Source: Octopus vulgaris
Taxonomy: Eukaryota
Assembly: GCA_951406725.2 (NCBI GenBank)
Contig: OX597815.1
Coordinates: 35,484,001-35,732,000 of the forward strand
Direction: 5' to 3'
DNA: 248,000 bases
How positions within the stretch are numbered: the stretch's first letter is position 1; each line of letters opens with the position of its first letter. Of the stretch, positions 6,386-212,605 are shown one piece after another. The notes under the pieces were generated by a model. The model saw only the letters and a list, made by a program, of their open reading frames with translations, made no database searches and was not told the origin of the DNA. The position numbers and the translations under genes were made by a program.

Positions 6386-7675
6386 ATTTCGTCTGCGTTA
6401 CGTTGAGTTCAAATTCCGCCGAGGTCGACTTTGCCTTTCATCCTTTCGAGGTCGATAAATTAAGTACTAGTTACGCACTGGGGTCGATGTAATCGACTTA
6501 ATACCTATGTCTGTCCTTGTTTGTCCCCTCTGTGTTTAGCCCCTTGTGGGTAATAAAGAAATGGGTATTTCGTCTGTCTTTACGTTGAGTTCAAATTCCG
6601 CCGAGGTCGACTTTACCTTTCATCCTTTCGGGATCGATTAAATAAGTACCAGTTACGCACTGGGGCCGATGTAATCGACTTAATACCTATGTCTGTCCTT
6701 GTTTGTCCCCTCTATGTTTAGCCCCTTGTGGGTAATAAAGAAATAGGTATATGTATAATTGAGTGTAATTCGTTTTATCGTCTCGCTAAACAATGGAAAG
6801 TAAAGGAACTTGACAGGATTTGAACTCAGAAACTAAATGGATGTAACTAAGTACTACCGGTCCACCGACTTTACGTCACCACTGCCTTTCTATTGATTTT
6901 ACCGCACTCGTAATAATGGTGATGATAATGAGTGTCCTTAACATAAACACAAGACCTCACATTTTGAGCGATGCGATTTAGTTGTTTATATCTATCCCAG
7001 TAAATGGCTAGTACTTCATCTATTCAACTCCGGAAACATAAACAGAAAAGCTGACCTCAGCATGATTTGAACGGAGAATGTGAGGAGCCTATAAAAATAC
7101 TGCAAGTCACTTTATCCGGCTCTGTAACGATTTAGCCAAAAGAACAAAGGCAACGATAACATTATATTAATATTGCCACACACATATACAAGAATTATGA
7201 AGCAAATCTGAATCATTTCTCGCTTTTATGTTTTTACCGCCCCCTTTATTTTTTTCACGCTTGCCCCATAACCCACTGCAATAATTCATGTGGGGGGTGT
7301 TTTTTATGCTTTTCCAGAGGTTTTCGATGAATTCTTTGCAAACAGATTATTATTTTTTCCTTCCTTTCTTTCGTGTAATTAGTCAATAGACATGTGGGTT
7401 GTTGTCTGGAATCGGTCGTGCTGCAAAGAAAATCGATTTGAGTCAGAGAAATGACGTCATTGCAAGAACGCTCGATCAATGAAAAGTCTGCTGGCTATGG
7501 CAGTACATATAGACTAGACAACACTGAGAATTTTTTTTTTCCGTATTAAATACTAGTCCTGTTTATATATATTCATATTATGGTTTGTATGTTTTAGTAC
7601 ATGCTTGTGTGTGTGTGTGTGTGAATGTGTATGTATATATAGAAAACATATAAATATATACATATATACGTGTGT

Positions 7676-184520: not shown

Positions 184521-187500
184521 CTAGCAGAGATACCCGGCGTTGCCCGGTTACATTCAATAGAAGAATTAGACTTTTCTGTTATATATATATATATGGATAC
184601 ACAAACACATACACACACAAATATATGTATATTAATATAAATACATGAAAGTACATGAATTTTGTTAAAAAAAAGGGGATCTTGTATATACCTCCTGGCT
184701 GTTGAGATTATAACACCTCGTTGTAAACAATGTTCCTTGTTTTTCCTTGTGGAGCATATACAAGAAGGTTTCTTTTGGTTCCTACTCTTGAGCAGCCAAC
184801 ATACAGTTGCCTATGCGAGAAGCAGGGCTCTTCCAAGAGAAGACCAGCTACAGAGAGGGTTTGACCCTGAGATTTGTTAATGGACATGGCAAAGCTGACA
184901 CGAAGGGGGAATTGCAGTCTTCTGAATGTAAATGGAATTTCTGCTCCTGATGGAGTAAGAGGAAATCTTGGAATAAAGACGTCATCACCTTTTCCACATC
185001 CAGAAAGAATGATCGCCTCGATAACGTGTGATATCATTTTCTTTATCACCAGTCGTGTTCCATTGCAAAGTCTTGGTGGTTCCAGATTGCGGAGTAGCAT
185101 TACAGGAGTTCCAACTTTAAGTGGTAATATGTGTGGAGGTAGTCGAAGAGGCTCCAGTGAATTGAGAAATTCAGGAGGATAGTTCACAACTTCATTTATA
185201 TCTGGAATTGTATCAACAGACTTGTAAGTGTGTCTAGTGCCGGGAAGAGAATGCATTAGCTGTTGATTAATTTTGTTAACAGCGACGTTTTTTGGAGCTA
185301 ATATGGCTCTTTCACACCGCCAATTGTGATTTTGGTAGTTTTGTGTGAAGTTGGGAAAGACTTTGTTTTTGAGGTCATCTACAGAATGAACAACAGAGGA
185401 AAATGACCACATGTTCCATTTGTCCTGCAGCATCGAGAGGCATCTTGCCTTCACCAAGTGTCAAAATGTCGTGTGCAAACTTTGTGGACATTTTGTCGCC
185501 TTGTAGCTGAGCTCTCATGTTAGTGGTGAGACTAAAGATTGCAACATGATGACATAGGGTAGAGGACTTTAGGCATGCTTGAACTTCATCAGCTCTAGTG
185601 CCTTTCGGAATGATAGGAAGAGTTTGCCTGAAATCACCTGACAACAGAAGCGTTACACCTCCCATTGGAGCCTGACAGTCACGGATGTCTTTCAGGGTTC
185701 TATCTAATGCTTCCAAAGCTCCCTTGTGAGCCATAGTGCACTCAGCCAGACAATTACATAACACATTTTAAGTACTTGTCCCTGATCTGAGCTTTTGTTG
185801 ATGTTGCATGAGAGGGAGTTTAAAAGTTGAGTGTGCTGTCCTGCCACCGGGTAACAAAGTAGCTGCAATGCCAGAGGAGGCTACAGCTACTGCAATGTCC
185901 TGATGCTACCTAACTTCTGCAAGGAGAAGCTTTGTAATAAATGTTTTTTCTGTCCCTCCAGGAGCACCGAGGAAGAAGATTGGTCCCTCGCGTTGGCGTA
186001 CACTGTTAAGAATAGTTCTGTAGGCCTGCAGCTGGTCCGGAAGTAATTTAGGCTCATTTTCAACAATGTACTTTGAAAGCGCTTGAGTGTCGTAGGTTGT
186101 TTCACGAATGACAGCAGTGGGAAGGCTATTTGACCTTGACCTGAATGCTTATGGCAGGCCATACGTCGACAATTCATTTCCACCCAGTTTATCAATTCTG
186201 TCTTCAACGTCAATGAGTGTTTTGTTATAGATTTCATTGCTGATACCCTCCATGTCAGGATAGAGCAGTTGAGCTTGGCGCTGAAGGGGACAATGTTTTT
186301 GAGATTCCGGTTCGAATGTAAGGCAGGATTGAAAGTGTTCCCAACAGTTATTAGTTGTAGTGGTAGAGTGTTTATGCCGAATATGTACGTATGTATATAT
186401 ATGTATGCATGCCTGTATATATGTACAAAATCCACTGAGAAGGCTTTTGATGGTCTGAAGCTACAGCAGAAGACACATGCCAAGTCACCACACAGTGGGA
186501 CCGAACCCAGGACCATGTGTTTGGAACGTAGTTTGTTACCACACAGCCACACCTGCCCCTACGTATGTGTGTGTGTGTGCGTGTGTGTTATGGGTAGATA
186601 TGTTATGCATGTATATATGTGTATATATATGTGTACATATTACATGTACATCTATATATATACATCTACACATAAAATACAAAATACAAAGTTATATCAT
186701 GATATCGCTAGTGATAACAATACTCAAAATATATAACAGACTGGAATTGTAGGCCCGTCTCTTGCAATTTCGATCAATTGGATCTTGTCCTCCCTCTTGT
186801 ATAGAAGTGTACGGCTGCAGCGAAATTCAATTTTGGACTTTCTTCTTTCGAAGGCATTTTAACAAAAATGCTTCCGTAAAGACAGTGAAAATATTGTCAA
186901 TTACCCCAAACAGGGACATAATTCAATTTTTAAACAATAACCAAAGCCCCTTCTCCGAAAGGGGGAGGGTTACGGTTTACAATTATTTAACAAATGCAAC
187001 ACAACAACGTTTCCCTGACGAGGAACCAACAAACGTGATTACAATAGTCAAACAGTAATAATAATAACAACAAACCTTTTTAATTTATCCCCATTTATGT
187101 GAAACCGCTTATTCAAGTTCAAGTCATTGATGCAATTTTATACGAATTGCTAATACACACACACACACACACACACACACATAATAAGAGTGAAAAATTG
187201 AATATTAATTTGATTAATATGAATTGAAAACCAGTGGTGTAGCATATAAGACCATAGCGGATCTTCCTCTAGCAAAAAGGATGACAACTATTAATGGCTC
187301 ATCCCTGTTATATAATACTTTCACTTTAATAGTTTCACACTTGCAAAGAGAAAGTGTGGTGGTAATAGCAGGAGTAAACCACTTGAAATGAGAGAGGCAA
187401 ATCGTAAAATATTGAGTTTTCTTGAATTTTTGCTTAATTGAGGGTCAAACTGAAAAAATTTATATGCCATGACCCAATCGAATCTACTTCGAAAAATCAT

Positions 187501-201589: not shown

Positions 201590-204500
201590 GATACTTTGAT
201601 ACTTTGATAGGTTTCGGCCATTATTGGCCCAGGCCATGTCTAACTTAATAGCACCACCTGGTGAAGTCTTTCAAGTCAGAATTTGGGCACTATGGCCCAC
201701 TCAAGTAGAGAGTTATTGTTTGCAGAGACATATCCGGGTGTAGGGGGTTTATCCGGGATTTCTTGAAAGAATCTGTCCAAAGACTTCTTGAACCCTATAG
201801 GGTCAGTTTCTGTTTTAATGTGTTTTGGTGTAATGTTAAAGAGAGCGGGGCCAATTGAGGTGAAATAATTGTGCCGTATTGTTGTTATGAGATGAGAGTG
201901 CGATTTTTGTTTTGGGCGGATGGCACGGGGCCCAAGCCTTGGATGTACCTTAAAGGTGATGCCAACATCATTTGGGCAATGCTGATGGAATATTTTCCAC
202001 ATCATGCAGATGATGTAGCGCTCACGACGACGTTGGAGAGAATAGAGTTTTAGCTTTTCTAGTCGACCCCAATAGTCGAGGCCTGTCATGCCATCTATCT
202101 TTTTTGTGATTGCCCTTTGAGGTGCTTCAACTTTTATGATACCTTGTATTGTGTGGGGAGACCACAGTGGACAACAGTATTCAAGGTGGGGTCGGACAAA
202201 AGTGGAGAAGAGAAGGATAATGGTGTGGATATCTCTCGACTGGAAAGTTCTGAGAATCCAGGAACACATTCTGCGGGCCATGTCAACTTTGGTGTTTATA
202301 TGAGTGGCCCAGCTTACGTTGTTGTCCACAATTACTCCCAAGTCTCTGATGTTGTTGGACGCCGCGAGAGTTTCACCTGAAGGAAGGGAGTATGGGAGTT
202401 TCAGGGCATCCTCTTTTCCAAAGTGGATTAGCTCAAATTTATCCTCGTTCAGCAGCATATTGTTTTTTTCTGCCCATTGGATAACAGCCAGTAGATCTGA
202501 CTGAAGGCATGTCCGGTCACCCGCCTCATTTATGACCTTCTGTAGCTTGGAGTCATCTGCAAAGATTTTTATGTTGCTGTGCTTGATGATGTCATTAATG
202601 TCATTAATGTAAATGATGAAAAGAAGTGGGCCCAGCACAGTGCCTTGCGGAACGCCACTACTGACTTTGGCTGGGCTTGATTTTACCCCTTCAACTACAA
202701 CATGTTGAGATCTGTCTGTCAGGAAACACTTAATCCATTTCAGTAACTTTCCAGAGACACCAATGTTGGATAGTTTTTTCAATAGGATCTTGTGATCGAC
202801 CCTGTCGAAGGCCTTACTGAAATCAAGGTAGATGACATCGGTGTTGGAGCCCTCTCCCAAAGCTCTCAAAATGTCCTCAAAGTGATGCAGGAGCTGCGTT
202901 AGGCAGTCCCTTCCATTACGGAACCCATGTTGGTTGGAGATCAGCCGTCTGTTGCTTTCCAGAAATTGGGTTATTCGAGATCTCACCACCCTCTCAAATA
203001 CCTTGATGATATGAGAGGTGAGTGAGATCGGACGGTAATTCACTGCAAGGGACTTGTTTCCCTTTTTGAAAACTGGGACAACAGACTGGGACAGAAGGTT
203101 TTTTGGAATATAGCCAGCATCCAGTGAGTTTCTCCACAGATTAGCAAGGGGAGATGCAAGTTGGTGTCGACACACCTTCAGGACACAAGCAGGGAACCTA
203201 TCGGGGCCTACTGCTGAATTGTGTTTTATTTCGTTTATCGCCGCTAAGACATCAGGGGCACTAAATGTTATGTCCGATATAGTGTGTTGGGGGTTGACAT
203301 CACTGATACAGCCCAGATCGGCCATATCAGGATTGCTGAAAACAGAGCAGTATTGTTTCTGCAGTATCTCGGCCATGGATTTGGCATTATCTTGGAGAGT
203401 GCCAGTTTCGTCAATTAGAGGGCCTACAGTGGAGACAGTGACCCTGCGTTTCCTCGCAAATGAAAAGAACACTTTGGGGTTGAGTTTGATTTTTTCAATG
203501 GCCCACTTCTCCTCAGCTGATCTTTGGTTATTGATGAGGGTCTTCATGCATTGTTGGAGGTTATATTTTTTGGATTCAAGCAGTGCGATAGCCGTCGAAT
203601 GTGTGTGCTGCTGTTGGCAGTACTTTAGTTTGTTAATTTTTTTGTTTGTTCTTTTTATTTTTCTGATAATGGTTTTTCTGTTTTGGGGGATTCTGCACTT
203701 TTTGTTCACAGGTCTTGGTGGGGAGTGTTTTGCACATATGTCTGTGACGGTGTCTACAAAGATCTGCCAAGATGTTTTATGGTTGGTGGAGATGTGTGTA
203801 TGTGTAAAGGACCAGTCAACATTTGATAGCTCGTTCCTGATTGCATCCCAGTTGGCTTTATGGAGATCCATGTTGTCAAATGGGTGGGCTGGAGGAAGGT
203901 CACTAGGATTAGCTTTCGGCTGGTGGAATTTCATGTTACAGAGAACCATGTCATGGTCTGAAAGAAGGGTTTTTTCCACTGTAACGTTATGTATAGTGTT
204001 AGTGTGGTTACTAAACACTAGGTCCAAAATGTTCTGATGTCTTGTTGGTGCAAGGACAAGTTGGGACAAGAAAAACTCATTCGTAAAGTCGAAAAGTGAC
204101 TCTGCTGCTTCTTTGTCAGCGGTTGAGGCGGGAGTGCTTGGTTTCAAACAGTTTGTAGTCCAGTCAACACAGGGTAGATTGAAGTCTCCCATCATGAGTA
204201 TGTTGCTAGAATGGCACTGTTGAATAAAGCACTTAATGCTGTTGAGGCATTCTTTAAAGCACAGTATGGGTGTTTGGGGCGGCCTATAGAGCCCAATTAC
204301 TGTCAGGTCATTGGCTTTGTTGTGCACGGTGACTGATTCACAGTAGCCGTTGGAGAATATACTATTTCCATCTGCCGTAAATGAATCATGCAGGAAAATG
204401 GCAGTTCCACCCTTCCTCCTGCCGATACGATCCGCGCGGATGGTTGTGAAATTCTTCACTCTCACTTCGGCTTCCAAGTGGGAGTTGTCAAGGTGGGTCT

Positions 204501-204900
204501 CAGTGAGAATGAAGAAAGGGATGTGGTGTGAATGGTTACCAACCCAGTCTTCAATGAATTGGACCTTCCATTTTTGTGCATTGATGGAAGGGCTGACACC
204601 TTGTGCATTGAGTAGGAATGTGGAGGTTAGTGTAGTGGCTGGTTTTGACTGTTGCAGGGGGCTTGGATTTTGTGTGTGTGTTAGTGGCAGCAATGTGGGG
204701 AATTGGTGCACTGGGGTAATAGCATAGGATGGTGTTGAGTGATGGCTAGAATGTTTTTGTGTATCTCTTTTGCCATGTTCAACATGGCTAAAAAGAATTT
204801 TCCTGCTTAGGGAGCAGTTTTTGGCTGGAGGTGTGGTTGCACTGTTGGATAGGGTTGTAGTTTCCACTTTTGTTGTTGTTGTTTTTGTGTCTTCCTGAAA
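201590..204900 (-). mobile_element. CR1-type LINE with uninterrupted ORF2 (APE endonuclease plus RT)
   Basis: ORF 201676-205005 (N-terminal ~35 aa are microsatellite): LTETHL, GLYRPP, MGDFN, LDLVF, SDHDMV; [38 protein letters not shown]; 3' (TATCAAAG)n. Confidence 0.95.
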
Positions 204901-205045
204901 AGACACATATATATATACATATATATACATATACATATAAATATATATATATATACATACATATACATATATATACATATATATATATATATATATTGTA
205001 TACATATATATATATGTATATATATTATATATATATATATATATG

Positions 205046-205077
<32 letters not shown>

Positions 205078-205083
205078 TGTGTG

Positions 205084-205134
<51 letters not shown>

Positions 205135-205303
205135 GACGGGCTTCTTTCAGTTTCCGTCAACCAAATCGGTCGGCGCGAGGCTATAGTAGTAGACACTTGC
205201 CCAAGGTGCCACGCGGTGGGACTGAACACGGAACCATGTGGCTAGTAAGCAAGCTACTTACCACATAGCCACTCCTGCGCCTTACCACACAACCACTCCT
205301 CTC

Positions 205304-205335
<32 letters not shown>

Positions 205336-206585
205336 TGTGTGTGTATGTGTGTGTGTGTATGTGTGTGTGTGTGTGTATTTCTATGTATGTATCTACATAT
205401 ATATATATGTATGTATGTATGTATGTATTATGTATGTATGTATGCATATGTGTATATGTGTCTATATATATATATATACATACACACATAAATACATACA
205501 TACATAATACTTACCTACATACATACGTACGTACGTACGTACGTACATACATACATACATAAATACATACATACATAAATACATACATACATACATACAT
205601 ACATACATACATACATACATACATACATACATACATACATACATACACACACTCATACCTCGGTATTACAGACCACCCTTTAACGAATTCCTGAAGCAGC
205701 GGACAAAAGCAAAGCGTATCAACAACGCCGCTTCACCATCCATGGGAAGTCTGATTTTAAATTAAAAATGTTGAATTTACTGTATTATAGTCTATATTTA
205801 CAGTGTACAGGTATTTTACATTGTCAGATTGGATAGCGTACTTGATTAAAAGTATAGTACTGTATTTATTCCTGTCTTTCGTAATGTGATTGTTGATATT
205901 AGCCACTCCTAACGTAACCTAACCGTAGTGTCGGTACCTACGGACAATCGGCTTCATCGGACCGGTGTTTCCCCCTTTTAATCCGTAGTACCTATTTCTT
206001 TACTACCCACAAGGGGCTAAACACAGACGGGACAAACAAGGACAGAAAAACAGATTAAGTCGATTACATCGATCCCAGTGCGTAACTGGTACTTATTTAA
206101 TCGAACCCGAAAGGATGAAAGGCAAAGTCGACCTCGGCGGAATTTGAACTCAGAACGTAACGGCAGACGAAATACCGCTAAACATTTCGCCCGGCGTGCT
206201 AACGTTTCTGCAATCTCGCCGTAGTACCGCGATATGAGTGTATATGTGTGTGTGTATGTATGTATGAATCCATATCGATATGCATATACATAGTATATAT
206301 GTATAAATACATTGGTCGATATTTACGAAGAAGGAAGCGAGTATTCAATATATTATAAAATATATTATATGTACAAAGCAACCAGCGGGCAGAATTGTTA
206401 GCACGCCGGGCATAATGCTTAGCGGCGTTTCATCCATCTTTATGTTGTGAGTGCAAATTCGGTTGAAGTCGGCTTTACCTTTAATCCTTTTGATGTCGAT
206501 AAAATAAGTTAAGCACCGGTGTTAATTTAATCAATTTGCTCCCTCTTGAAATTGCTAGTCTTGTGCCAAAATTTGAAACTAATAT

Positions 206586-207136: not shown

Positions 207137-207213
<77 letters not shown>

Positions 207214-207920
207214 ATATATATGCATATATATGTGCGTGAGTGCGTCTATCTGTGCGTGTGTGTGTGTATGCGTGTGTGTTGAACGATGTGTAGAATATTT
207301 ATAATGCATATATCAACTTATAATTTCTAGTGCCTATATTTACATACATACATACACACATACATACATACATACATACATACATACATACATACATACA
207401 TACATACATACAAACAAAGTTAATACTCTGTGATATAAGGTAACGATATGATACCTGAGGTTTAGCCTTTCTGAAAGCAGACTATCCTTCAAGGAATGAA
207501 TTAAAAGAAAGAAACTTGCGCTGTGGCCTTAATGCCTTTTTCCATCACCCTATGCAGCCGTATATACGAAATCCCCATGTGAAGTAAATTTACGCAACGA
207601 AATCGAAGTAAAATTGCCGCGTTATTCGAAAACGGATATTCATTATTATTGATTGGATAGTAAAGTCGATGAAGTAATCAAAAATATTCGGTAATCTAGT
207701 TCAAGCGTTAGAATAACTAAAGTGTAAATAAATCCTTGACCGTATTCAATGAGCGGGTTTTTACACAAATATAACAGTACAGTTCTTAATACCTGTTCTG
207801 AAGGTAATATACCCGTGTAATTACATATCCGCATAAATTTTAATATTTGAATTCTTTCTGCTAGTAATAAATTCCTGTCGTCTCTGTTGTGTGTAATGTT
207901 TGTTGTTACGGCGCATTCAA

Positions 207921-208035
207921 TGACGTCAATTTGCGTTGGAGGTGCGGCTTCTTAATAAAAACGGAGGGGTGGAGCTTAGCCATATACGGCTGAAGTGGGA
208001 AATTAAACTGAAATGAGATCAGACAGCTATATAAG
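207921..208035 (+). promoter_or_regulatory. Candidate promoter: CRE, CArG-like box and TATA box
   Basis: TGACGTCA at 207921-28, GGAGGGGTGGAG GC-box-like, CCATATACGG at 207980-89 (one mismatch to CArG), TATATAAG at 208028-35; ~270 bp before the ATG at 208307. Confidence 0.6.
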
Positions 208036-208306
208036 CTATCACGGCGTTACGAAACTTTATTCTGAAACTTTGACACTCACCAACGAAGTACACAGTGAAA
208101 TAGTGAAATATCTGAAGTGAGAAACACTCGACTTATAAATTCAAATCGAGGAACTTTTTAAAACTAAACTAAACGAAAGAAGGTACAGTGAAATATTTAT
208201 TTGAACTTTCATCTAATTTCATACAGACTTCGCTCAGCAATATTGCATAATATCGTCGCTGCCCTGTGAATTTTCTTACCAAACAAATTATTTCTATTTC
208301 ATCAAC

Positions 208307-208933
208307 ATGCTTGATAACGAAGTATATTTGAAATACGGACCCTACCGTCGCATTCGCAGAAATGCTTTGGCCAATATAATGGAAGGGTTAAATCAAGAAG
208401 CCGTTAACTGGCTGTCGAAAAATATTGCACATCAGTCCAATTCGGTTGACCATCGATGTGAGAAATATACTGATGATGAAAGTAACGTTAGTGGTGATGA
208501 AGGCGACGATGAAAATGAGAATGATGATGACGACGACGATGACGATGCCGGAGGCGTTGAAACCGTCGAAGAAAAAAAAGATGGGAAATATCTGGCTATA
208601 GATGAAGAGAAATCCGTGTTAAATCAGGAAAATAATGAAGGCATTACCTGCCAGAACGATTCTGAATTAAACAAGGCGGATTGTTTCAGACGTCTGAGTT
208701 CACCTATGGAATGTCGATTCCAGTCGTCATTTGCGGCGATCCGGCGGAATGCTTTACACAATTTATTGGAAACATTAACACCAGCCGAAATCTCAACACT
208801 TGGCAAGTTGTATCAGTTGCAACATTCTGTGAAGGACTTAACTTTAGAACAAGAGCGATTCGATCACTTGGTGACACCTGTTCAATACCCATACATTGAG
208901 ACATATTTCGACAAATATTTAACCCAAGTATGA
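208307..208933 (+). CDS. Orphan intronless 208-aa acidic protein with two RRNAL PKA-pseudosubstrate-like repeats
   Basis: Non-repetitive ORF in unique sequence; internal repeat IRRNALANIMEGL / IRRNALHNLLETL; Asp/Glu-rich linker; RRLS site; promoter upstream and AU-rich 3' flank. Confidence 0.8.
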   Translation: MLDNEVYLKYGPYRRIRRNALANIMEGLNQEAVNWLSKNIAHQSNSVDHRCEKYTDDESNVSGDEGDDENENDDDDDDDDAGGVETVEEKKDGKYLAIDEEKSVLNQENNEGITCQNDSELNKADCFRRLSSPMECRFQSSFAAIRRNALHNLLETLTPAEISTLGKLYQLQHSVKDLTLEQERFDHLVTPVQYPYIETYFDKYLTQV

Positions 208934-209526
208934 TTGAAGATATTGCAACAAACGGAAGAGAAAATAAAATCATTTTAAATGTTTTAAAATGCCGAGAAAA
209001 AAAAACTGAAGCATGCGTTTCTATGAAAATTCCTTATCGGTCAAAATTTCTGAAATGAGCAGAAAGAAGAAAGAAATTATACCAAGTAGGGCGAAATGAG
209101 ATAGAACAGGATTTTGTCCATAGAAACAAAGCAACGAACAAACCTTTTTCACTAAAATCTCTGCTCATAAAAAGCAGACGACCGATTGAATGGGCTTACA
209201 GAAAATATGTATGGTGAGCAGAGATTGTGCATATGTTATGCATTTTGTGTTTTCTCAATTAGCATGCAGTTTTGTTTTGATTAATTTATATATTTTCTGC
209301 GTGCGAAATATTTGATGACTAACAATTTGTTAACGAGAAATAATGGATAAGAAGCATAAAATGTTTCGAAGTAAACTCTATATTGTTCAAAAGGAAAAAA
209401 GAAAAAAAAAACGAACAAAGAAAAGAAAATGGAAGAAAAAAGATCGACTAACCCGTATTGAATGAGAGACGAAAGAATTTCTTTTTGAATTTTTTTTTAA
209501 CTGGAATGCTTACATAATTCGTTCGC

Positions 209527-209945
209527 TTATTTATTTACCAAAAGACTCCGAAATATCGAGTAAGAAGATTACCTGTTAAAAACTGAACATTAGAGACAAG
209601 TGTGTTCTTCTGATACACACGCTTGCACACAAAACATTTGTAAACCAGACATGTGTATTGGAACTTACTTTTAAAAAGATACCAAAGCATAAACATTTTC
209701 TCCCGTTTGTGTATCATATCTGATATGTCATACAATGATATATATATATGTTATGTGCCACATAAAACAAAGTTTATTGTAACACTCACTCACACAAACG
209801 CACACACACATTAACTAAACATGAATAAACAAGTCGCTCTCAGCCGAAGACAACTACTTACTTCAACAGGTAGTTATAATCAACATCATTCTCCCTCTCA
209901 CTCTCACTCTCTCTCTCTCCACTTATATTTTATTTATTTATTTAT
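209527..209945 (+). promoter_or_regulatory. AU-rich elements and candidate polyadenylation signal
   Basis: TTATTTATTTA at ~209527, overlapping ATTTA run at ~209930-209945, AATAAA at ~209824. Confidence 0.4.
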
Positions 209946-210076
209946 GTTATAAACATTATATCGCATTCGATGTAAATTTTGTCATCCCTTTATTATCATT
210001 TAAAACAAACACGTACATGAACAATATATATATACATACATATATACATATATATGTGTATGTATATATTATATAT

Positions 210077-210151
<75 letters not shown>

Positions 210152-210269
210152 TATATTATATTATATTATACATACATACATATATTCATACATTCATACA
210201 TACATTGTAATATTTAGGGATGATAATTCGTTTTAGTCGAAAATCTAACGTCATCTTCAGCCAGTATAT

Positions 210270-210300
<31 letters not shown>

Positions 210301-210438
210301 CATACATACATACACAGCATATTCATTTTTTTTTAAAGCTAGTTACTGACTCAGTGATTCGCCCGATGTTGTTCGAGCATTCGTATCGAGCGAGTCAACT
210401 GCTAAACAGCAACGGAGGGAATCACTATTTTCATACAA

Positions 210439-210540
<102 letters not shown>

Positions 210541-211905
210541 GTGTGTGTGTGTGTACAACAAATAGTTTAGAAACACTTCATTAAAACTTATTTATATTTT
210601 TGGTTCACTTTTTTTTTCATAACGCAAACTCCCATTTTTAACTGTGTAGTTTCATGTATCATCTGTATCAGCATATATATATATATATATACACGTATTT
210701 ATATGTATATATGTATGTACTGTATGTATTGTAAACTCAAATTAGACCCACAAAGTGTACTGGTGCCATATCCAGAACTGTGCTGATATCACACACACGG
210801 AAATCCTATACCATGGTGATAATAATATATATTTCTTAAAAGAAAACTGTCATGTACCCACTAATCATCACCTCATCATCAGGAAGTTTTACACTTAATA
210901 ACATTTTTACAATGAGGCTGTGCTTAATGTCTTAAAATAATGTCTTGGTTAAATCTGTTTTGTACAACAAACGACGAAATAAAACACATGGTTGATACGA
211001 ACTAAATTTATCGGTTTTTGTCATTTTTGTTGAACGAAATTTGCAATAGCTGTCTCTCGGAGTCCCCCACAACTCACAGGAAACGAAAAGAATAATTTTT
211101 ACTCCCTTCAGTATTGTTGTGGTCTCACACAACAGAAATTACGACACTGGAATTTTTTTCACCTAAAATCTCAATTTTTTTTTAATATACTTGTTTTCCC
211201 CTTCACCACCACTATTTCCGTACACTTTTCGTTACCCATCTGTATGAGGTTTCGAGAGACAGCTATTCCAAAGATCCAGCTTCCGTTATTGAATTTTTCT
211301 TTACAAAACATCGTAAAAAATAAAACATGTACCGACTAGAGGAATAAGGAATTTCAAGAAGTTTTGAAAACAATATATTCGATCTTCAGTAACTGACAAC
211401 ACACTTCAACAAAGAATTATTGCTGTTATGTGATTTACCAACCAGTTTATATGAGAAAATATCCCATTGTTCACGGAAACCCGTTACGAAGAAATTTTTC
211501 ACACGTGAAAACAGAATTTGGGGAGGTGAATAATTATAATTCTTTAAAATGTAGTTTATTTTCTTTTATTTTCCTGGTCAGGTATAAAAGCCACAGATGT
211601 ATTTCGAAAATCAGGGGTTTACTTACGTTATGTCTAAAGGGAGATGTTATGCGAATGACGTTACTGACCCACCAAGCAATACCATTTTTTTCTCTTTTAT
211701 TCCTTTACTTGTTTCTTTTATTCTTTTACCGGAGACCCGCCTTGAAGAGTATTAGTCGAAGAAATCGACCCCTGGACTTGTTCTTCGTAAGCCTTGTACT
211801 TATTCTATCGGTCTCTTTTGTCAAACCGCTATGTTACGGGGACGTAAACACACCAACCTCGATTATCAAGCGATGGTGTGAGGATAAACATAAACACAAA
211901 CACAT

Positions 211906-211937
<32 letters not shown>

Positions 211938-212605
211938 TTATATGAATATATATAGAGATATATATACATATATATATACATATACTCGATGGGTTTCTTT
212001 TAGTTTCTGTCTACCAAATCCATTCACAAGGCTTTAGTCGGCCCAAGGCTGTAGTAAAAGACACTTGCCCAATGTGCCACGCAGTGGGACTGAACCCGAA
212101 AACATATGGTTGGGAAGCAAGCTTCTAACCACACAGCCACACCTGCAACACCAAACTTTTTTTCCCCGTGGCTCTGCGCTGAAATTAGCTTACGTGCAAA
212201 TTTGGTCTTTCTTTGCAAAGTATTTATGCAAGTATTTATGTGAGTAACCATTTTTAATTTAAAAGAAAAAATTCAATTTTACCTTGAAAACCCTGTGCGC
212301 GCACATTTTTTTAGCACATGTTGTAAAACACGTCCTGGGTATGTAAGATTGAGGTAGTGCTTAGCGTGGGAACTCGTGGGACAATAGGTGTGTCGAGAAA
212401 CGGAAAGACGAGTGAGTCAGGAGTCCTCAAGCAGAGGTGGCACGAACCCAAGAGCCCCGATGAGCAGATATTACTTTAGTAGCAGTCAAAAATGTGACTA
212501 AAGGCAACAAAATGTCTGTGGGAAAGAGACGATGGACGACTTCATCAAGTCACCCGAGGGTGTTCCATGTGTGAAAAAAACAACGATATTCTGTCACCCA
212601 TAGAT

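Follow-up and report, generated by a model that had tools for sequence, protein, structure and literature searches.

An intronless octopus gene with paired RRNAL cores and a conserved CREB/SRF-type promoter belongs to an undescribed cephalopod family

Gene, transcript and promoter at the locus

The stretch of DNA analyzed here, referred to as the window, is the 248-kb interval C2:35484001-35732000 of the 2.8-Gb Octopus vulgaris assembly. It harbors an intronless gene whose protein carries two RRNAL cores and whose promoter combines a full cyclic AMP response element (CRE), a CArG-like box and a TATA box (Table 1). An earlier note on this DNA had read the gene as an orphan encoding a candidate inhibitor of the cAMP-dependent protein kinase (PKA) with two pseudosubstrate motifs. 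The open reading frame (ORF) and every coding motif that it listed (RRNAL, RRNALHN, RRLS and LQHSVKDLTL) were recovered in place. We conclude with high confidence that the gene is transcribed, intronless and under selective constraint, that it belongs to an undescribed cephalopod family and that its CRE/CArG/TATA promoter is conserved.

Run SRR3401912, an octopus meta-transcriptome (PMC11662614), provided a contig, L006, which is colinear with positions 208081-209441 of the window. The gene is therefore transcribed, without an intron in the 5′ untranslated region (5′UTR), in the coding sequence (CDS) or in at least 500 nt of the 3′UTR. This result confirmed the intronless structure and, with regard to transcription, answered a question that had been set beforehand as a test able to refute the proposal. 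Base 11 of the contig aligns to position 208081, which places its 5′ end about 40 bp past the TATA box, so that this TATA box is probably the one in use. The AATAAA signal at 208963 is read through in the same transcript. Upstream of the start codon, bases 167-229 of L006 (window 208244-208306) contain an in-frame ATG 21 codons away, with no stop in between, which could extend the protein; ATGATAT is likewise present in the L002 alignment (frame not checked). Since the window has ATA there, this extension is not conserved.

The nearest relative of the window protein is an uncharacterized O. bimaculoides protein, A0A0L8HRC2, with 94% identity, followed by proteins on contigs of two further octopus data sets (81-85%) and by a hypothetical protein of Argonauta hians (60%). 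Comparison with Argonauta gave a ratio of non-synonymous to synonymous substitution rates (dN/dS) of 0.19 over the whole CDS, with values of 0.13 for the N-terminal 45 residues, 0.45 for the acidic linker and 0.066 for the C-terminal third. The orthologues, the colinear transcript and this ratio show that the gene is real. A chance ORF or a non-functional sequence, an idea that surroundings rich in repeats and transposons might encourage, is refuted by the transcription of the locus, its conservation from Octopus to Argonauta and beyond at a dN/dS of 0.19 and the conservation of its promoter, and its probability is practically nil. The Argonauta hians model, P0005 (L001 6001-6060), starts 20 codons 5′ of the conserved TCAACATGCTTG start context, and its N-terminal extension (MRSQGFLF...) is probably a mis-annotation.

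Scanning 205.5-211.5 kb of the window with Rfam returned no family and only sub-threshold, microsatellite-derived microRNA look-alikes. A literature search with the UniProt identifier of the O. bimaculoides relative found nothing, and the octopus immediate-early-gene literature that was searched deals with egr1, creb, or heat-shock/immediate-early genes as a class, without mention of the window gene. In published O. vulgaris single-cell data set against single-nucleus data, immediate-early genes are raised by dissociation (PMC9712504).

Conservation of the promoter is the strongest new result of the analysis. Positions 207937-207994 align with Argonauta at 76% identity (BLASTN), the neighboring non-coding DNA being mostly unalignable. 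The full CRE is kept in L002, L005, Argonauta (L001) and the distant orthologue L007, while the CArG box matches CC(A/T)6GG without mismatch in L002, Argonauta and L007. CRE and CArG box are 59 bp apart at three loci (the window, L002 and L007) and 67 bp apart in Argonauta. The phylogenetic footprint thus confirmed the upstream CRE, CArG-like box and TATA box described earlier, as a second octopus, Argonauta and the distant orthologue have kept all three. In the four aligned promoters of subfamily A, to which the window gene belongs (see below), CTATATAA is invariant; TATATAAG is present also in L007 and L008. Among the promoters of the other subfamily, B, the octopus one (L012) has one full CRE and CCAAT boxes, and that of L008 two full CREs and a TATA box.

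All five full CREs found in 63.6 kb of fetched loci sit in family promoters. Within the window, full CREs number 8 per 248 kb (0.032 per kb), against 2.6 expected from dinucleotide shuffles, none of 100 shuffles reaching 8. The seven other TGACGTCA sites lie at 7452, 31397, 107500, 113707, 132186, 133010 and 222744. A further promoter under CREB control may lie at the pair 132186/133010.

Of all sequence features, a full CRE near a TATA box best predicts a response to cAMP, and a CRE combined with a serum response element (SRE) is the promoter design of c-fos and egr1. At the window locus, the full CRE and the TATA box are 107 bp apart with the CArG box in between, and this arrangement is conserved across species, as expected of immediate-early genes under CREB and SRF, which are marked by a full CRE within ~200 bp of a TATA box and/or a proximal CArG box. 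A full CRE stands a short way upstream in each of the family promoters examined. The immediate-early type of promoter suggested earlier is thus well supported by the phylogenetic footprint. Because of the full CRE by the TATA box and the CRE/SRE design, we infer on good grounds that CREB and SRF would induce the gene.

Table 1. Features of the RRNAL gene, in window coordinates
Feature	Position	Strand	Remarks
CRE, full palindromic, TGACGTCA	207921-207928	.	107 bp 5′ of the TATA box
Conserved promoter block TGGAGGTGCGG...GGGG(T/C)GGAGCTTAG	207937-207989	+	Ends in the CArG-like box
CArG-like box CCATATACGG	207980-207989	+	One mismatch in the window
TATA box TATATAAG	208028-208035	+	CArG box stands between CRE and TATA box
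5′UTR, intronless	208071-208306	+	Transcript 5′ end inferred at ~208060-208071 from L006
CDS	208307-208933	+	Single exon, 208 aa plus stop
N-module, residues 1-45, MLDNEV...YRRIRRNALANIMEGL...WLSKNIA	208307-208441	+	RRNAL at 208355-208369
Linker, residues 46-125, acidic, D/E-rich, disordered	208442-208681	+	Predicted local distance difference test (pLDDT) <50
RRLS, then Ser132-Pro133	208688-208705	+	Motif match; RRLS 208688-208699, Ser132-Pro133 208700-208705
C-module, residues 138-170, FQSSFAAIRRNALHNLLETLTPAEISTLGKLYQ	208718-208816	+	RRNALHN at 208742-208762
LQHSVKDLTL, nuclear export signal (NES)-like, class 1a spacing	208817-208846	+	Pattern match
T-Q-V C-terminus, class I PDZ ligand form	208922-208930	+	Conservation in subfamily A
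3′UTR, transcript-supported	208934-209441	+	L006 colinearity
Possible further 3′UTR, candidate only	209528-209945	+	AU-rich-element-like TTATTTATTTA 209528-209537; AATAAA 209824-209829; TATTTATTTATTTAT 209931-209945

Paired modules and the family they define

All members of the family consist of an N-module and a C-module around a variable disordered linker, which is acidic in subfamily A and Ser/Thr-rich in subfamily B. In the window protein, RRNAL corresponds to residues 17-21, with Arg14 at P-6, and RRNALHN to residues 146-152, with Phe138 at P-11. Comparison of the two modules by hhalign shows that they are homologous (Prob 94%, P 8.6e-8). The pattern RRN[A/G][L/M] occurs in 24 of the 24 modules of 12 proteins, with a P0 residue that is never Ser or Thr, and it is invariant in the alignment of N-modules (11/11). 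In the C-modules, invariance covers the 13 residues RRNALH(D/N)LLETLT in nine of nine sequences from both subfamilies. Both cores are therefore invariant in orthologues and paralogues, which settles in favor of the earlier note the conservation of RRNAL that it had named as able to refute it.

An AlphaFold2 model built on an eight-sequence family alignment describes a mostly disordered chain (mean pLDDT 46, predicted template modeling score 0.18), in which residues 16-27/30-45 of the N-module and 139-156/159-168 of the C-module form predicted helices arranged as helix-turn-helix, with pLDDT up to ~70. Confidence was low both in this run and in that of a PKI control.

Relatives are confined to cephalopod or cephalopod-like samples, both in a HMMER search that covered 1.84 billion representatives exhaustively and in a profile search. 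They fall into two subfamilies: A, which includes the window gene, starts with MLDNEV and ends with T-x-V, and B starts with MTGE and ends with HECKA. Subfamily A takes in P0020, an orthologue with 33% identity to the window protein. This distant orthologue and the non-octopod sequences of subfamily B presumably belong to decapodiform cephalopods. In the window's own genome, subfamily A is represented by a single copy, and subfamily B by an intact intronless gene of 246 aa on contig C7 and by a truncated copy on C15. The gene is thus not the orphan singleton that had been supposed, as it belongs to a family of at least two paralogous subfamilies. Restriction to one lineage and the lack of a named family did hold: no source naming the family was found, and no Pfam model matches the whole window protein.

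Three sets of family sequences call for comment. In L007 (5769-6405; ENA assembly ERZ21867824), the distant A orthologue is frameshifted between its N- and C-halves, either through misassembly or because this copy is a polymorphic pseudogene; P0020 (L028), which derives from a transcript, is intact. The truncated B copy, G000:C15:14026451-14026636 (+), equivalent to L013 1312-1689, retains the C-module and the terminal HECKA only. A repeat that recurs in the window at 205127-205449 and 211752-212145 is fused to its upstream side, and the copy is probably a pseudogene or a transduced fragment. Finally, the subfamily B protein P0011 was found in 111 indexed blocks, nearly all of them contigs shorter than 2 kb, and four of these contigs (L029-L032) have 127-299 nt before the ATG; the pattern suggests an mRNA with abundant and broad expression. 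Two further candidates, P0006 (831 aa) and P0010, were rejected as relatives because they are internally repetitive, with 8-10 repeats of a short look-alike (TRDCLHNMLDTLAP...) that inflate E-values.

Outside the modules, Ser132 is invariant in both subfamilies and Pro133 is found in all sequences except Argonauta (SSS), which suggests a proline-directed site. At the C-terminus, TQV is present in every octopod orthologue and THV precedes the stop in the distant orthologue, HECKA taking this place in subfamily B; from its form, the T-x-V tail could be a PDZ-domain ligand.

Resemblance to PKI and proposed function

PKI, the RI subunits of PKA and ARHGAP36 act as pseudosubstrates of the PKA catalytic subunit (PKA-C). 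We tentatively propose that the RRNAL cores likewise act as pseudosubstrates of PKA, as part of a negative feedback loop driven by CREB. Increased cAMP, Ca2+ or MAPK signaling would activate CREB and SRF and so lead to transcription of the gene; one or both RRNAL cores would then fill the substrate cleft of free PKA-C, resulting in delayed negative feedback on PKA. With two cores, the protein may gain avidity or engage two catalytic subunits. The inducibility of the gene and the PKA binding, bivalency and localization of its product are inferred. This reading is the single most likely mechanism and agrees with the regulatory logic; it rests on a conserved five-residue motif and is opposed by the helical prediction.

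PKI is the best Pfam and PDB match of the C-module, though below threshold. A C-module profile compared with 177,635 PDB sequences had PKI-alpha as its top match (E 0.09), the alignment from F(P-11) to P+4 pairing FqsSfariRRNALHDLL with FIASGRTGRRNAIHDIL, and thus RRNALHDLL with RRNAIHDIL. In Pfam, the PKI family PF02827 ranked first for seven of nine C-modules (best E 0.016, 15.9 bits). A hidden Markov model (HMM) built from five invertebrate PKIs gave 3.6-7.6 bits per module, and hhalign comparison of both modules with the same five proteins gave a P of ~8e-5, its score of 26 standing against 8 +/- 1.8 for column-shuffled PKI (0/200 shuffles reach it). Both kinds of protein are small, acidic and disordered, and share a non-phosphorylatable RRNA[I/L/V] core, which occurs in two copies per protein in the RRNAL family. 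They differ in that PKI has about 75 aa, against 208-251 aa and two cores in the RRNAL family, and in that the window gene is intronless with a CRE/CArG promoter. The invariant GRTG that precedes the core in invertebrate PKIs is also missing from the RRNAL family.

Several observations weigh against the PKA reading, and the first of them concern kinship with PKI. The genome already contains a separate canonical PKI, the first coding exon of which lies on another contig (G000:C4:157575121-157575255 (-), equivalent to L009 1435-1692 (-)). Its sequence, MTDVDVNSHLQDFIASGRTGRRNALTNIIQDGLSKVSTGDLPYELEKLKCTGK (MTDVDVNSHLQDFIASGRTGRRNALTNIIQDGL...), matches PF02827 with 50.6 bits, so that the genome has an ordinary PKI besides the RRNAL family. 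The PF02827 genome scan retrieved this PKI and not the window locus. The Pfam check suggested earlier turned out negative: the whole protein has no match, and no module exceeds the gathering score of 25 bits, 15.9 being the best for a module fragment. Furthermore, the strong hhalign score collapsed once the RRNA[L] columns were masked. The N-module flanks were then without PKI signal, 123 of 150 shuffles scoring as high, and the C-module flanks retained a weak and differently spaced match, in which PAEISTLG faces PYELEKLK of PKI and which three of 150 shuffles reached. Because of this collapse, common descent with PKI is not claimed. Sub-threshold scores, masked flanks without a convincing signal and the separate canonical PKI indicate that the family is PKI-like in motif and not a PKI member; it has the core motif of PKI, without a demonstrable common ancestry.

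These data also bear on a possible origin of the family as a diverged PKI retrocopy with an internal duplication of the inhibitory segment, which would be compatible with a PKA function. Such an origin would agree with the intronless structure of the window gene, the frame of the canonical octopus PKI appearing to end at an exon boundary, and with the position of the N-module at the extreme N-terminus like the PKI segment (MLDNEV / MTGEI vs MTDVDV). The pattern RRNAL(A/T)NI(M/I)(E/QD)GL common to octopus PKI and the hhalign P of ~8e-5 point in the same direction. However, the absence of significant similarity in the N-module flanks after masking of the core, scores under the Pfam cut-off and a different architecture (208-251 aa vs 56-90 aa) make this origin unlikely.

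A second set of observations concerns the residues around the core. The high-affinity PKI determinants that the earlier note had pointed out, Arg14 at P-6 and Phe138 at P-11, are present, but each is found in one module only and shifts by lineage. The N-module of the window protein has Arg at P-6 but Lys at P-11 (Tyr at P-10), and its C-module has Phe at P-11 but Ala at P-6. In most family proteins, Arg occupies P-6 in one module or more, and an aromatic residue likewise occupies P-11, neither residue being conserved at a fixed position. Their combination as in PKI, F(P-11)...R(P-6)..RRNAL, is encountered only in distant N-modules of subfamily B. In addition, invertebrate PKIs carry at P+2 a proline that the RRNAL family does not have. 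This inconsistent placement would fit cores that are pseudosubstrates of another basophilic kinase (PKG, CaMK, RSK/MSK/S6K or PKC-type) with the same feedback logic. The R-R-x-A-hydrophobic pattern is known in general to suit several AGC/CaMK consensus sites, and the CArG box beside the CRE suggests MAPK and Ca2+ inputs as well as cAMP. Since Asn at P-1 makes RRNA the signature of PKI, PKI provides the best database matches and nothing observed points to another kinase, we regard this substitution of kinase as improbable.

Thirdly, the predicted structure of the modules departs from that of a genuine PKI folded by the same procedure. RRNAL lies within predicted helices (16-27 and 139-156), unlike the RRNA of the PKI control, which is coil after a short N-terminal helix. 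Invariance also reaches eight residues beyond P+1 (HDLLETLT), more than a cleft-binding pseudosubstrate needs. Both features would be expected if the modules were helical-hairpin docking motifs unrelated to PKA, with RRN as a basic N-cap before an amphipathic helix. The hydrophobic-x-x-hydrophobic-hydrophobic-acidic pattern (LHDLLE, LANIME, LCNIFD, MADIFE), like that of activation-domain/LxxLL motifs on coactivators such as CBP/p300, is found in 24 of 24 modules, and the linker is acidic; on this view, the protein would be a transcriptional co-regulator or adaptor that is inducible, acidic and disordered. Profile matches to the first helices of death folds (POP1 pyrin, E 0.8; DED, E 0.059) go weakly in this direction. 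However, docking of this kind leaves unexplained the invariant Asn at P-1 and the Ala or Gly at P0, never Ser or Thr, no such database family rises above noise, and AlphaFold2, here with a mean pLDDT of 46, often over-predicts helices in binding motifs. We consider it possible, if rather unlikely, that the modules are such hairpins; this is the main rival of the PKA reading, which keeps its tentative preference. A death-fold (pyrin/DED) domain proper was rejected: the similarity is sub-threshold and limited to helix 1, with the DED match in one member, and the six-helix bundle of ~90 aa contrasts with a conserved module of ~30 aa in which AlphaFold2 predicts no bundle.

The remaining points touch the evidence first put forward for a PKA inhibitor. 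RRNAL was the criterion by which the window gene had been selected, so its presence there is not independent evidence and only its conservation is. The RRLS motif, described as a PKA-type site, is present but not conserved, being replaced by SRLS in the L006 octopus and by ELAS in P0020. Similarly, the NES spacing of LQHSVKDLTL exists but is kept in octopods only (the distant orthologue has LLQLTIESDD and subfamily B differs), and an export function is unsupported. The AU-rich 3′ flank is not unusual, because its count of six ATTTA in 1017 nt is reached by 8.6% of equal-sized tiles of the AT-rich window. One ATTTA, at 209284, lies in the transcript-supported 3′UTR, the clustered AUUUA runs (209528 and 209931) being located beyond the mapped transcript.

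Database comparisons also brought up vertebrate TC1/TCIM (C8orf4; PF15063). TC1 is a small disordered protein, reported to activate Wnt/beta-catenin signaling, and the family could be related to it and act in such a pathway. Four of 11 N-modules match PF15063 (best E 0.0055), with RRNA(L/M).(N/D)IFE(N/G)..(E/D) facing RKKAVGNIFENTDQE in the neighborhood of A-x-x-N-I-F-E-N, and hhalign gave a P of 1.7e-4 against a human TC1 sequence that had not been drawn from a database. Nevertheless, these matches stay below the 27-bit Pfam cut-off and involve subfamily B N-modules only, the window protein having none, and the PF15063 genome scan gave K-rich low-complexity noise only. TC1 moreover has RKKAV in a single module, unlike the two RRNAL modules of the family, and kinship with it is very unlikely. 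Whole-protein Pfam and PDB matches were likewise set aside as acidic low-complexity noise.

Known systems offer partial analogues of the proposed PKA feedback. ARHGAP36, unrelated to PKI, blocks PKA-C via a bare RRGAV core as well as PKI(5-24) (PMC5059767); since this core works without PKI kinship, RRxA-hydrophobic cores arise by convergence. The likeness to the RRNAL family is limited to this bare core in a protein unrelated to PKI: ARHGAP36 is a large RhoGAP-family protein with a single core, also drives PKA-C degradation and has no kinship to the RRNAL family. The nearest analogue of a bivalent design is PDE7A1, the N-terminus of which has repeated RRGAI pseudosubstrate cores acting on PKA-C. 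Its repeats, in one polypeptide as in the RRNAL family, are joined to a phosphodiesterase catalytic domain, read RRGAI and not RRNAL, and show no homology. Finally, ICER/CREM and other CRE-driven feedback genes follow the same logic, in that the cAMP pathway induces its own inhibitor through a promoter with a CRE. ICER, however, is a bZIP repressor and works at the DNA, whereas the window protein lacks a DNA-binding domain and would target the kinase.

Taking these elements further, coleoid cephalopods may have evolved their own CREB/SRF-induced family of proteins with two pseudosubstrates, whose subfamily A would be brought to synaptic scaffolds by its PDZ ligand and act there as an activity-induced, local bivalent clamp on free PKA-C. 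The family would have arisen independently of PKI and would add a lineage-specific layer of feedback to the cAMP signaling on which molluscan plasticity depends. We put this forward as a possible, on balance doubtful, scenario.

Genomic surroundings and significance

The gene is embedded in transposon- and microsatellite-rich DNA. Three kilobases upstream, on the opposite strand, a non-LTR (long terminal repeat) retrotransposon ORF of the LINE (long interspersed nuclear element) type occupies window 201676-205146 (-), with 1156 codons from stop to stop and endonuclease (PF14529, PF03372) and reverse transcriptase (PF00078) domains. At 184708-185767 (-), two adjoining ORFs with a Pif1-type helicase 2B domain (PF21530) have the appearance of a Helitron-like helicase fragment. 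Microsatellites bracket the transcription unit, with (TA)n and (TACA)n upstream (207143-207416) and (AT)n, (ATAC)n and (TG)n downstream (210024-210554), and yield sub-threshold Rfam matches to mir-297, mir-466 and mir-3149.

The textbook account of molluscan learning centers on cAMP, PKA and CREB signaling, and among invertebrates the largest brains are those of cephalopods. If the proposal is true, a cephalopod-only family that is switched on by the cAMP pathway and carries two PKA-inhibitor cores would constitute a new lineage-specific feedback element, and would be, after ARHGAP36, another example of the convergent origin of PKI-type pseudosubstrates. In addition, the conserved CRE and CArG promoter would serve cephalopod neuroscience as a compact reporter element for activity. 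Should the PKA idea prove wrong, the RRNAL family still represents an undescribed, strongly constrained and probably activity-regulated gene set.

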